NCBI GenBank assembly: GCA_004431415.1
Contig: QPMI01000161.1
Coordinates: 148,461 to 212,460 of the forward strand
Direction of reading: 5' to 3'
DNA length: 64,000 nucleotides
Source: Cyanophora paradoxa CCMP329
Taxonomy: Eukaryota; Plantae; Glaucophyta
Shown here piece by piece: positions 732 through 34,821 of the stretch. The notes beneath the pieces were generated by a model that was not told where the DNA came from, made no database searches, and saw only the letters and a program-made list of their open reading frames with translations. Every line of letters starts with the position of its first letter. The first letter of the stretch is position 1. The position numbers were made by a program, and so were the translations under genes.

Positions 732-1574
732 GACTTTCATCGACTAGAAGGAGAATCTAATTTGCACGACGTCGGCGTGCACACTGCTCGTACTCGCTCG
801 CACCCGAATCGCCGTAGTGCGCGTCACTTTCGAATTCGCTGAATGTTTTTGCTTCTGACAGTGACTAAATATTTATATTTACATGTCCTAGTGGCGTTCA
901 ACGGTTGATGTAGGCAGGCCGCTTGGTCGGTTCAAACTCGCGAAACATAGTTCGACGGTTTCTTGCAAAAAAATGTACACGTAAACGTTCCCCCTGGGTG
1001 TACCTTAAGCTTAGTAGTGTCGACGTCATGTTCATTCTAATTACCAAAACAGCTATACTATAGCTAAGATATATTGTACTGTAATTATAACTTGTCAGTG
1101 ACAGCCGACTCGGCGAACTTCGGAAATCAATCTTTTCGCAACCGTTGAATTCGAACGTTAGCTATAGCGCGTAGTCGCCAGTTTCTAGATCTTTTTCCAG
1201 ATTCAATCGTAATGATTCCGAGCTCGATCCGATGATCGCGAGTTTTTTTGTCACAGTGTGTCCAAATATAATCATGCAACCACCGTGGCACGCCGTGACG
1301 TGCACCGTCCCGGTATACCGCGGTACTACGGTACGAGTTACTGAGTGAGACACCACCAGAGACCCCGGGCCCGACGTCGACAGTGACTGGCCAGGTGGTA
1401 CTCGCGATCGGTATGCATCTCAAATTTAAAGATGTGAATTCTTAGTTACATGCAGAACCCGAAGGCTCAAGATCACGAATATTCCAACTAGATCTCATGA
1501 ATATTACCAATAACTAGATCCTGATCACCACTCGAGCTCAGCACAGCGGCCTCTCCTGCAGTCTCCTGCAGAGG

Positions 1575-26671: not shown

Positions 26672-29041
26672 CTACTGGGCGAGGTGGAGTTGGTTGAGGT
26701 CGAACGTGACGCGCCCTAAGGAGGCCTGTCTGTTCTCGACCGGGTTGTGCTGCGGCGCATCGACTCAGGAATGGCCAAGCGCAGTGATCGGGAGGGGCAG
26801 AGAAGGGGCGGACCCTGCGGTTCTGCTGTGGCGTGGGGACGACGCCGCCTCCCGATGGGGCGTACTGCGGGCCGCCGCCGCCGCCGGGGGAGCCGCGGCC
26901 GGCGCCGGCGACGGCGCCGGCGAAGCCGCCGGAGGCGGGGCGGTCCATGGAGGGCTCGCGGTTGGCGGCGATGCCGCCGATGGCGGCCTGGAACTTGTTC
27001 ATGGCGATGGCGGCGAGGATGCCCTTCTTGAAGCGGCGACGCGCGTTGAACGAGCGCAGGTTCTCGATGATCGTCGGCGAGAGGGCCGTCTCCGCCGCCG
27101 TGTGGCCCTTGATCCAGGGGTGGTTCAGGCACTGCTCCGCCGTGTACCGCTTCGTCGGGTCCACCACCAGCAGGTGCCGGATCAGGTCCTTGGCCGACTC
27201 CGAGATCGTCGACCACTCGTCCGGCGGGAACTCGAAGTGCCCCTTGTACACCATCTTGAAGATCTCCTGGATGTTGTCCCCGTAGAACGGGTAGTACCCG
27301 CACAGCCTGCACCCCGGCCGTCATCGGAGGAAAGGAGAGAAAAGGGAAGGAAGGGGAGGGGTGGGAGGGGGGCGGGCGCACAGGATGTAGGTGATGACGC
27401 CGATGGACCACATGTCGCAGGAGGCGGAGTAGCCCTTGCGGGAGATGACCTCGGGGGCGATGTACTCGGGGGTCCCCACGATCCGCTGCACGACCTTGGC
27501 CGCCGGGCTGTCGTAGAACTGCGAGAGCCCGAAGTCGATCACCTTGATCTCCGAGTGCTCCTCCCGCGTCGCGTAGATCAGGTTCTCCGGCTGCGCGGCG
27601 TCAGCCGCGCCGCCTGCGCCCCAGGCTGCTGCGGGGGGGCGGGGACCTTGAGGTCGCAGTGGCAGATGCCCTGGGAGTGGACGTGGTGCAGGCCCGACAC
27701 GATCTTGCGCAGCACGCTCGCCGCGTCCCGCTCCGAGTACGACCCCTTCTCCAGGATCCGGTCGAAGAGCTCCCCGCCACGCATCCTGTGCCGCCGCCGC
27801 GATGAATTCAACAAGACGTGTAAAACGTATAGAGCCGAAACGATTGACGTAATGTTCACGATACTTAGGTGGGCCAGCGCAGCGTCGGTGGCCCCTCCCC
27901 CGGGAGGGCTGGGCGGGGAGGGGCGGCAGGAAGGGCGAAAAAAAGCGCACAGCTCCATGACGATGGAAAGTTCTCCGGGCGTCTCGAAGACCTCTTTCAG
28001 CTTCACCACGTTCGGGTGGTTCAGCCGCCGCATGATCCGGATTTCCTGCGGCGGGCGGGCCTAAGCCGGGCCGGCCGGACCGGAGCCGCACGGGCGGGCG
28101 CTCTCACGGCCCGCCCCGCGGAGCGCGCACCTGCAGGATGTGCGTCTTGTTGTCCTCGAACGTTTTCCTCTTGATCTGCTTCAGGGCCCACTGCTTGCCG
28201 TTCTGCCGGTCGACCGCCACCTTCACCGCCGCGAAGCCGCCGCTGCGCGCTCGGGTAAATGCCTCGCGACGCCCCCCTTCGAACGCGGGCGACGGACCTG
28301 CCGAGCTGCTCCTGCAGATCATACTTGTCCTCTATGCGCTCGAGCTTCGGGATGTCGACGCGCTCTTCCCACGGCGTCGACGCAGGATTGTACGCAGGCA
28401 CTGCAGCATGGGCCGCCGAGTATCCTCCGCCAGTCTGCGGGGCTTCGCGCCGCGTTGACGGCTGTCCTCCCCCCATGGCGGGCGGGGGCGTTGACAGGGG
28501 TGGCTGGGCAGCGGGGCGTCATCTGCGGGAAAAGGAAGCTAGCTAAGGAAGGGCGCGTACCATAGCATAGTTCGGTTGCTGCGGCTTGGCCGAGTAGGAC
28601 GCCCCACTGCTAACCGGCGTCCCCCTCCAGATGGCTTTGATCGCATCGACCCACGTCTGACGTTCGTGCGCCGAGTCGGCGTAAAGCGTGTGATTGCCGT
28701 CCGACGCGTTGAGCTGCGAGACGTGGCCCCTTGATCAGGGGCGGCAGTTGGGCCAAGGTCAGACGGTGCGGACCTTGAATCCGTAGCGTCCGTCGCTTTC
28801 GACAAGACCAAGAATCGGATCGCTGTTAGGCGGAATGCTGATCGACTTGGAGCCGCCAACCTGCGGCAGCCGCCTCGTTATGCGAACGCCGCTAACATGG
28901 AGCTTTTAACGCGGCCCGGCAAACCTTCGGATCTTTGGAGTACGTCACTGAGCCTTTGCTGATGATGAAGTACCGCGTCTTCCATCGCTTGAAGAGCCGG
29001 CCCTTCTTTGCAAGCCACCCGGCCTTCTGGTCGCTGCTCAT
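26672..29041 (-). CDS. CAMK-family Ser/Thr kinase with an N-terminal PH domain; a further upstream exon is possible
   Basis: [38 protein letters not shown] (PH); [42 protein letters not shown] CaM-binding tail. Confidence 0.9.
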
Positions 29042-32780: not shown

Positions 32781-32953
32781 ACACGTCTATACCTACGTAA
32801 CGCTCTTCCAGGATAGCGCGTCCCGATTCAACTTGCTTGGTAGGGTAGGGTTACGCTCGGCGCACTAGCTTGGAAAAGAAGGCCAGCCAACCACAGGTAC
32901 TCCCGAGCGGCCGCCGACTGCAGGCGATCGATCGCTGCCGGCCGGCGGCGGCC

Positions 32954-34583
32954 ATGGCGCAGCCGGAGATTTCGATCCAAGTCGCGACCGCCGGCCCGCA
33001 GCTTGCAGCCCTGCAAACGGCTGGCGCGTCCAAGAGCAAGCTCGCCGTGCATTACGTGACGGTGGGTGATGTCTCAGCCGCGATCGGAGGCCGCTGCTGA
33101 ACCCGTCGCGAACAGCCCGGCGAGGTGATCACTTCTGAGCAGGGCTTTCTACGGTGAGCGACGCAGCGCCAATGAATACACCATCGATCGCGCTCTGATC
33201 CCTGCGCTCGCGCAGGGGCCACGGCACGTACGTGGAGGACGGCAGCCTGATCGCTTCTGTGAGCGGCGTGGTGGAGCGTGTGAACAAGCTCATCTCCGTG
33301 CGGCCGCTGCGTTCCAGGTGCCCCGCAACGCCGAGCAAACCGCTCGCGACTCGGCCTCACATCGCGGCGCAGGTACACTGGCGAGATTGGCGATGTGGTG
33401 GTCGGGCGCATCGCGGAGGTCGGCCAGAAGCGGTGGAAAGTCGACGTGAACTCGCGACAAGACGCCGTGCTTCAGCTATCTTCTATCAACCTTCCCGGCG
33501 GCGTTCAGGTTCGGAACACTTCGTCTCGAGACTTTCCCATTCGAAATCACCGCACAATCTAAGCCTTAATTCGAATGATGACCAAAAAAATTATCAAAGG
33601 CTTAACCATTGACGTCCCTCACGGGGCGCTTGAAACAACCTTTGTCTGACTCTGCGATCTATTCATCTTTCCTACTTCTCCCGCCCCACTTTCACGGAGT
33701 AAACTATCTCGAATGATGACCAAAAAAATTATCAAAGGCTTAACCATTGACGTCCCTCACGGGGCGCTTGAAACAACCTTTGTCTGACTCTGCGATCTAT
33801 TCATCTTTCCTACTTCTCCCGCCCCACTTTCACGGAGTAAACTATCTCGAATGATGACCAAAAAATTATCAAAGGCTTAACCATTGACGTCCCTCACGGG
33901 GCGCTTGAAAACACCTTTGTCTGACTCGCCTCTCTCCCTGCGCGCTTAATTTCCGGCCCCCTCGTACCCGTCCTCGCCAGCTGCTCACCACTCCCGCGCC
34001 GCCGCCGGCAGCGGAGGCGCACGATGGAGGACGAGCTGAACATGCGACTCTTCTTCGAAGAGGGGGACCTGATCTCGGTGCGCTGGGATCCCCCCGAGGC
34101 CCCGCTCCTCCCCCCCGACGCGCTTGCCGGCAGGCGGAGGTGCAGTCCTTCTTCGCGGACGGGGCGCTGGGCCTTCACACGCGCTCGCTCAAGTACGGGA
34201 AGCTGGAGAACGGCGTGGTGGTGGTCGTGCCGCAGACGCTCGTGAAGCGGGCCAAGCAGCACTTCCACAGCCTGCCCGAGCTCGGGGTGGACGTCATCCT
34301 GGGGAACAACGGCTTCTGCTGGGTGGCGCCCCTCGAGAAGGGCGAGGCGACGCGGGAGGCGCGCGAGGCCGTCGCCCGCGTCCGCAACGCCATCGAGCTC
34401 CTCGGCCAGCTCTTCGTCGCCGTGTACCCCCAGACCATCGCCGACGTCGTCGAGGGCGCCGCCGCCCGCGGGCTCTCCCCGGCGGAGATGCTCAGGCCCG
34501 AGCACGCCCTGGCGATCACGGAGCGCGCCCGCTCCCGCCGAGAGGTACCCGAGGGCGCCTCCGCCAAGTACGGCGAGATATAG
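32954..34583 (+). CDS. RRP4: Exosome complex component RRP4 (EXOSC2), multi-exon
   Basis: [88 protein letters not shown]. Confidence 0.95.
33575..33649 (+). ncRNA. Putative box C/D snoRNA, copy 1
   Basis: Box C ATGATGA 33575-33581, box D CTGA 33646-33649, 75 nt, internal hairpin cgtccc-tcac-ggggcg, intronic and on the sense strand. Confidence 0.65.
33713..33787 (+). ncRNA. Putative box C/D snoRNA, copy 2
   Basis: Identical to copy 1. Confidence 0.65.
33851..33924 (+). ncRNA. Putative box C/D snoRNA, copy 3 (variant)
   Basis: Boxes C and D retained; the A-run is 1 nt shorter and gaaacaacc becomes gaaaacacc; box D lies ~87 nt from the 3' splice site. Confidence 0.65.
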
Positions 34584-34821
34584 CCGCTCGGGTAGTGCAC
34601 AGCGTACGCCTGGTTGGGCCCAGCAGCAGCAGCGCGGGGCAGAGCAGTTCTCGTCAGGTTTAGAGTACGTAGTAACCGTAGCGCAGGCCAGGCAGTGTAA
34701 GGTTCTGCAGTTATCGTAGTAGTGTTAATACTGTGTTATTGCTTCACTTATTCGATCGAATCGACGCGAGCTACGTACAGATACGCCGCCGACGGACTGA
34801 GCGACATCGGGGCCGGGGCCC

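Follow-up and report, generated by a model that had tools for sequence, protein, structure and literature searches.

A candidate cluster of box C/D snoRNA genes in an intron of the exosome subunit gene RRP4 of Cyanophora paradoxa

The RRP4 gene and its fourth intron

The window analysed here is a stretch of 64,000 nucleotides of Cyanophora paradoxa DNA, and all positions given below are those of the window. The gene for the exosome cap subunit RRP4 lies on its plus strand, and one intron of this gene contains a tandem array of three short units with the boxes of box C/D snoRNAs. The part of the gene surrounding this intron is composed of the following features.

33373–33508, plus strand: RRP4 exon 4, first part of the S1 domain (Pfam RRP4_S1, E 1.1e-21; ends taken from transcript contigs)
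33509–34011, plus strand: host intron, RRP4 intron 4, 503 nt, GT..AG, 50% G+C (spliced contigs of runs X15 and X17)
34012–34077, plus strand: RRP4 exon 5, remainder of the S1 domain (Pfam RRP4_S1, E 7.5e-07)
34134–34583, plus strand: last RRP4 exon, KH domain and stop codon (Pfam KH_6, E 5.7e-11; RRP4 homologues)

The RRP4 exons were searched singly and not joined into a spliced protein. Both exons flanking the intron matched Pfam RRP4_S1 and the last exon matched KH_6, with RRP4/EXOSC2 proteins as its homologues. The EukProt protein tig00000655_g2884.t1 (P0001) was 100% identical to the last exon, the next best RRP4 relatives being 46–51% identical. Logan contigs of four public runs were placed on positions 32900–34700, and two of these runs, X15 and X17, which come from two studies, are RNA judging by their spliced contigs. 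Contigs of both X15 and X17 skip exactly 33509–34011, and a transcript contig of approximately 1.96 kb in each RNA run gave RRP4 introns of, in order, 54, 62, 55, 503 and 56 nt, all GT..AG. Intron 4 is approximately nine times longer than the other introns of the gene and has a G+C content of 50%, compared with 63–80% in the other four introns and 70% in the window. The preliminary description of this DNA had placed a 503-nt intron, far longer than its neighbours, in RRP4, and this is confirmed by spliced contigs from two studies and by the RRP4_S1 and KH_6 matches. The long-read assembly of the C. paradoxa genome has a G+C content of 67.6% and many short introns with a mean length of 86 bp (PMC6704402). 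A second large low-G+C island of the window (791–1294, 504 nt, 44% G+C) contained neither a box C/D pair nor a tandem repeat and probably lies between genes.

The tandem array and the anatomy of its units

Tandem Repeats Finder (TRF) reported an array within intron 4 with a period of 138, 2.6 copies and 98% matches, and alignment of the copies together with the positions of the boxes resolved it as follows.

33571–33927, plus strand: tandem array, period 138 bp, 2.6 copies (TRF, alignment of copies)
33575–33649, plus strand: snoRNA copy 1, 75 nt (box coordinates, shuffle tests)
33650–33712, plus strand: spacer 1, between box D and the next box C (alignment of copies)
33713–33787, plus strand: snoRNA copy 2, 75 nt, identical to copy 1 (alignment of copies, coordinates)
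33788–33850, plus strand: spacer 2, same sequence as spacer 1 (alignment of copies)
33851–33924, plus strand: snoRNA copy 3, 74 nt, three differences (alignment of copies, coordinates)

The three boxes C start at 33575, 33713 and 33851, a spacing of exactly 138 bp. Copies 1 and 2 are identical over the entire 138 bp, spacer included, and copy 3 differs from both at three positions, its A-run being one A shorter and a CA in copies 1 and 2 being replaced by AC (gaaacaacc to gaaaacacc). The array begins 4 nt 5' of the first box C and ends 3 nt 3' of the third box D (33921–33924) and therefore has the form unit-spacer-unit-spacer-unit, with spacer present only between units. No other long-period tandem repeat is present in the 64-kb window. 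Three units at exact 138-bp spacing had been described previously and are recovered here both by TRF and from the box C positions, and the identity of copies 1 and 2, extending through the spacer, upholds the accompanying suggestion of a recent amplification. The 7-mer CTTAATT forms a direct repeat around the whole array (33565–33571 and 33945–33951), with one copy abutting the first unit and the other lying 21 nt past the last, and this may be due to chance or may be a trace of the first unit's arrival.

Short-read DNA contigs from runs X1 (2012) and X4 (2024) break at the repeat, and the depth of the repeat contig relative to its flanks was 2.9–3.9x in X1 and 2.0–2.4x in X4. A repeat depth 2.0–3.9 times that of the flanks indicates the presence of several copies and rules out a single-copy assembly artefact, a possibility raised in the preliminary description; an excess of just this size is also incompatible with a dispersed high-copy repeat. 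The depth in X4 fits three units. The difference in depth between X1 and X4 (33606–33773) could reflect an extra copy in the X1 sample, for which four would fit, or a G+C bias of the older library.

The elements of the units, all on the plus strand, are given in full for copy 1 and by position for copies 2 and 3.

33575–33581, plus strand: copy 1 box C, AUGAUGA
33582–33608, plus strand: copy 1 27-nt stretch, including the A-run, with the putative D' guide at its 3' end
33609–33612, plus strand: copy 1 D', UUGA
33613–33628, plus strand: copy 1 hairpin, 6 bp CGUCCC/GGGGCG, loop UCAC
33629, plus strand: copy 1 single C
33630–33636, plus strand: copy 1 C', UUGAAAC
33637–33645, plus strand: copy 1 9-nt stretch
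33646–33649, plus strand: copy 1 box D, CUGA
Copy 2, plus strand: box C 33713–33719, D' 33747–33750, hairpin 33751–33766, C' 33768–33774, box D 33784–33787
Copy 3, plus strand: box C 33851–33857, D' 33884–33887, hairpin 33888–33903, C' (TTGAAAA) 33905–33911, box D 33921–33924

A box C/D snoRNA has box C (RUGAUGA) towards its 5' end and box D (CUGA) towards its 3' end, and its total length is approximately 60–120 nt. All three units carry a perfect ATGATGA and a perfect CTGA in the sense orientation of the host gene, at a distance of 75 nt in copies 1 and 2 and 74 nt in copy 3, and all lie within one spliced intron on the same plus strand as that gene, as in a polycistronic cluster. The layout of a k-turn consists of a canonical stem, a 3-nt bulge, tandem G.A pairs and two further pairs. 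The interior of the unit fits this layout, with D' abutting the 6-bp hairpin, which takes the part of the canonical stem, and the C' strand providing the bulge CUU followed by GA. Positions 5 and 6 of C' are both A and could form pairs with, respectively, U2 and U1 of D', giving an A-U in place of the usual G6-C1 pair. Both k-turn motifs, the internal one and that of boxes C and D, are intact in all three copies. The box C/D anatomy initially proposed for the units is thus supported by ATGATGA and CTGA in every copy and by the internal D'/C' pair, and the TTGA that had been termed only D'-like proves stronger than was claimed, since with the hairpin it makes a proper C'/D' k-turn.

The frequency of these arrangements in shuffled sequence was low. 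A box C followed 45–95 nt on by a box D, on either strand, was obtained in 62 of 20,000 dinucleotide shuffles of the 138-nt unit (0.3%), and the pattern UGA, stem of at least 5 bp, loop, 3 nt, GA was obtained once in 20,000 shuffles of the 64-nt interior (0.005%), although this second pattern was defined after viewing the sequence and the result is supportive rather than a clean test.

Other properties of the unit are less typical. The terminal stem of box C/D RNAs is usually 2–5 bp (PMC7671301). In the RRP4 units this stem is weak, with 1 bp (G-C) in the strict k-turn register and 2–3 bp with a one-base offset (A-U and G-C, plus C-G in copy 3), and no external stem better than those of shuffles could be formed from the 40-nt flanks. 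The free RNA folds with CAAAGG/CCUUUG around the hairpin, so that both putative guides pair together, which could hinder guiding, and the fold energy is not beyond that of shuffles (z −0.9 to −1.7). Antisense elements in this class of RNA lie next to D or D' and measure at least 10 nt. The segment preceding box D has just 9 nt and would probably not suffice as a guide. The CA to AC swap of copy 3 had been noted previously and is present as described, but its interpretation as guide diversification finds no support, the bases concerned being position 7 of C' and the first base of the 9-nt stretch. An 8-nt sequence upstream of copy 1 alone, TAAGCCTT at 33560–33567, is perfectly complementary to AAGGCTTA within the D' guide. 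This complementarity may be fortuitous, or the sequence may cover the guide of copy 1 in the precursor.

Transcript contigs, known families and rRNA complementarity

In addition to the spliced mRNA contigs, both RNA runs (X15 and X17) yielded a separate 168-nt repeat contig at 33698–33865, a length of 138+30 that is the form taken by a tandem cycle in a 31-mer graph. The depth of this contig was 10.2 and 16.6, compared with 49–54 for the mRNA contig, and the repeat RNA corresponds to approximately 7–15% of the mRNA level per copy. As the DNA depth gives approximately three genomic copies, the repeat RNA stems from the RRP4 intron. No RNA-run contig was observed on the unique 5' part of intron 4 or on the other four introns, although gaps between contigs prove nothing. 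The 168-nt contig spans the spacer, which indicates that species longer than one unit exist, and these may be either precursors or a longer protected RNA. The transcript contigs, which give neither size nor ends of the RNAs, provide modest support for a 75-nt RNA rather than proof of one.

When the whole window was searched with Rfam at the gathering threshold no hit was obtained, and at E ≤ 10 the sole sense-strand snoRNA hit on the intron was snoZ188, with 14.1 bits (E 6.4) against a threshold of 50. A further hit on the intron, to snoR77Y, was rejected as it lies on the minus strand and rests on the 8-nt complement upstream of copy 1 (33560–33567). No tRNA was found with ARAGORN, and no hits resulted from a metagenome scan for box C, gap, guide and D'. 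The window contains further box C/box D pairs at 28962, 36523 and 49309, which were discarded, being G+C-rich or without snoRNA form.

Complementarity to rRNA was examined with a panel of LSU 3' regions from other eukaryotes, collected through a conserved anchor and consisting of 118 metagenome loci and one usable locus on a viral contig; locus L028, on a human-gut metagenome contig, was left out of all analyses as possibly of human origin. The 11-mer TTAAGCCTTTG was present in three of the 114 readable LSU tails (L018, L079 and L089), always as CTGAGA-TTAAGCCTTTG-TT, and, judged against the 3' ends of two complete rDNA units, it lies approximately 20 nt from the LSU 3' end. The D' guide forms 11 bp with TTAAGCCTTTG, starting at position 4 relative to D', and the flanks add no pairs. 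Perfect 11-mers were also obtained with 7% of shuffled guides in the LSU parts of the panel and with 35% anywhere in the panel, and since 7% of shuffled guides equal the 11-bp match its statistical weight is small. The LSU segment itself varies, other lineages having TTAAGCCC, TTCAGCC (plant-like LSUs), TTTAGCC and others. Set against possible readings of an LSU 3' end, the D' guide matches GGTTAAGCCTTTGAT in full and GATTAAGCCTTTGTT over 11 bp, and has no match to TTCAGCC. The preliminary description had named a complementarity of the D' guide to UUAAGCCUUUG near the 3' end of yeast LSU rRNA; such a motif does occur near the LSU 3' end in three of 114 eukaryotic LSU sequences, but the match amounts to 11 bp and is equalled by 7% of shuffles.

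For the stretch before box D no conserved target was found in the LSU panel, the best match being 9 bp from position 5 at a conserved 5' LSU site. The two complete rDNA units contained no better site than the 11-bp LSU match, and they gave no support to the idea that the two guides mimic the helix formed by the 5.8S 5' end and the LSU 3' end. In a full-text search of the literature, the only sequences matching the 11-mer were unrelated primers and siRNAs. Two A+T-rich, giant-virus-like contigs from IMG/VR (L003 5890–6270 and L002 5230–5560) share an element of approximately 330 nt, in which Rfam calls no rRNA; it is bounded by an inverted repeat of approximately 30 nt, and its 5' part includes approximately 25 nt identical to the conserved eukaryotic LSU rRNA segment CTGAACGCCTCTAAGTCAGAATC.

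Interpretation and relation to known snoRNAs

The array in RRP4 intron 4 is probably a cluster of three near-identical box C/D snoRNA genes. By analogy with other RNAs of this class, the units would be transcribed within the RRP4 pre-mRNA, and binding of Snu13/15.5K to the C/D and C'/D' k-turns would be followed by assembly of Nop56, Nop58 and fibrillarin. Release would occur either through splicing and debranching or through cuts in the 56–63-nt spacers, with exonucleases trimming each unit to the protected snoRNP. Trimming from the ends alone would leave the three units of one intron joined, so that the spacers are expected to be cut, as they are in plants (PMC7671301). The antisense element is probably the 27-nt stretch before D', and 2'-O-methylation would be predicted at the base paired to the fifth position. 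By the simplest path, the array would have started from a single unit in an intron of approximately 227 nt. An older duplication would then have produced a second unit 56–63 nt away and left copy 3 with its three differences, and copies 1 and 2 would have arisen very recently, when unit and spacer were duplicated in tandem over 138 bp. Feedback on the host gene by way of the exosome, as proposed at the outset, is speculation, and the conjunction of an exosome host with trimming by the exosome is regarded as no more than a coincidence.

It is conceivable, though unlikely, that the units are orphan or decaying snoRNA copies which are made from the intron, may assemble poorly, guide no modification and were amplified by unequal crossing-over. 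Neither the full rRNA sets nor the 118 LSU loci provided a target beyond the 11-bp match that 7% of shuffles equal, and this interpretation is also consistent with the weak terminal stem and the lack of an Rfam relative; moreover, lineage-specific orphan snoRNAs are common, accounting for 17 of 131 in Ostreococcus (PMC7671301). However, both k-turn motifs are intact in the three copies, the rRNA searched for targets was that of other organisms, and the copies are too young to show decay.

A plain intronic minisatellite, with box-like motifs arising by chance and no RNA function, is a decidedly improbable explanation. Tandem duplication requires no function, and the unremarkable fold energy and the lack of a family match are as expected for such a repeat, but only 0.3% of shuffles contain a box C with a box D and only 0.005% reproduce the internal k-turn layout. 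In addition, the array is the sole long-period repeat of the window and is located in the single intron whose length is nine times that of the others, and RNA from the repeat is present in transcript assemblies that have no contig on other introns.

We regard as very improbable a C/D RNA that is specific to glaucophytes and is not a methylation guide, whether its 27-nt element pairs with the LSU 3'-terminal region during maturation, with exosome and RNA supply coupled via the host gene, or it forms an RNA of approximately 350 nt capped by snoRNPs at both ends. As a rival to the guide cluster, a chaperone or processing RNA of either form, possibly linked to the exosome host, is likewise very improbable. 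In its favour, three of the sampled eukaryotes have an 11-nt match approximately 20 nt from the LSU 3' end, the RNA contig spans the spacer and so indicates a species beyond one unit, and the host encodes an exosome cap subunit. Against it, the LSU match is statistically weak, its motif varies among eukaryotes with TTCAGCC in plant-like LSUs, mimicry of the 5.8S/LSU helix failed on two complete rDNA units, and ordinary precursors explain the spacer RNA equally well.

The interpretation as a cluster of snoRNA genes can be compared with systems already described. Polycistronic intronic C/D clusters are known in plants (rice and Arabidopsis), and two intronic clusters are present in Ostreococcus tauri (PMC7671301); intronic C/D clusters of Chlamydomonas are attributed to Chen et al. 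(2008, Genetics 179:21) as cited in PMC7671301. The presence of several snoRNAs in one intron is thus already known and is ordinary in plants and green algae. Of the snoRNA hosts of Ostreococcus, 33% function in ribosome biogenesis and 18% in RNA processing (PMC7671301), and RRP4, as an RNA-processing gene, belongs to a common class of snoRNA host. The RRP4 array resembles the plant and green-algal clusters in having several C/D units with short spacers in one intron of a protein-coding gene, in the origin of homologous copies through local tandem duplication and in a host tied to RNA processing or ribosome biogenesis. It differs from them in that its units are all one snoRNA rather than mixed guides, in its terminal stem, which is weaker than the usual 2–5 bp, and in its occurrence in a glaucophyte.

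Intronic C/D snoRNAs of animals and yeast occur one per intron, approximately 70–90 nt upstream of the 3' splice site. The RRP4 units are similar to these in box layout and size, 87 nt separate the end of copy 3 from the 3' splice site, and release by splicing, debranching and exonuclease trimming would likewise be shared; unlike the single snoRNAs, there are three units in the intron and cuts in the spacers would be needed. U13 and U8 are C/D snoRNAs that pair with rRNA ends and function in processing, not methylation. The RRP4 units would be comparable, as C/D RNAs complementary to a terminal rRNA segment, only if the LSU 3'-end match holds true for Cyanophora, and they differ in that they have no sequence relation to U13 or U8 (no Rfam hit) and their LSU target is putative.

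A literature search found no description of snoRNAs in Cyanophora or any other glaucophyte, and a small-RNA study of Cyanophora retained 16–32-nt reads only. If confirmed, the RRP4 units would count among the earliest snoRNA genes reported from a glaucophyte, and multi-snoRNA introns, a habit of plants and green algae, would also be present in the third lineage with primary plastids, which would bear on the ancestry of this habit in the Archaeplastida.

The intron is also relevant to gene prediction. The public model tig00000655_g2884.t1 (167 aa, 34024–34583) begins at an ATG at 34024 inside exon 5, just past the snoRNA intron, and is without the N-terminal region of RRP4 and most of the S1 domain. 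Similar breaks may occur elsewhere, at other long snoRNA-bearing introns in a genome of 50–90-nt introns. In contrast to the public model, the transcript contigs give a full six-exon RRP4 gene at 32900–34583.
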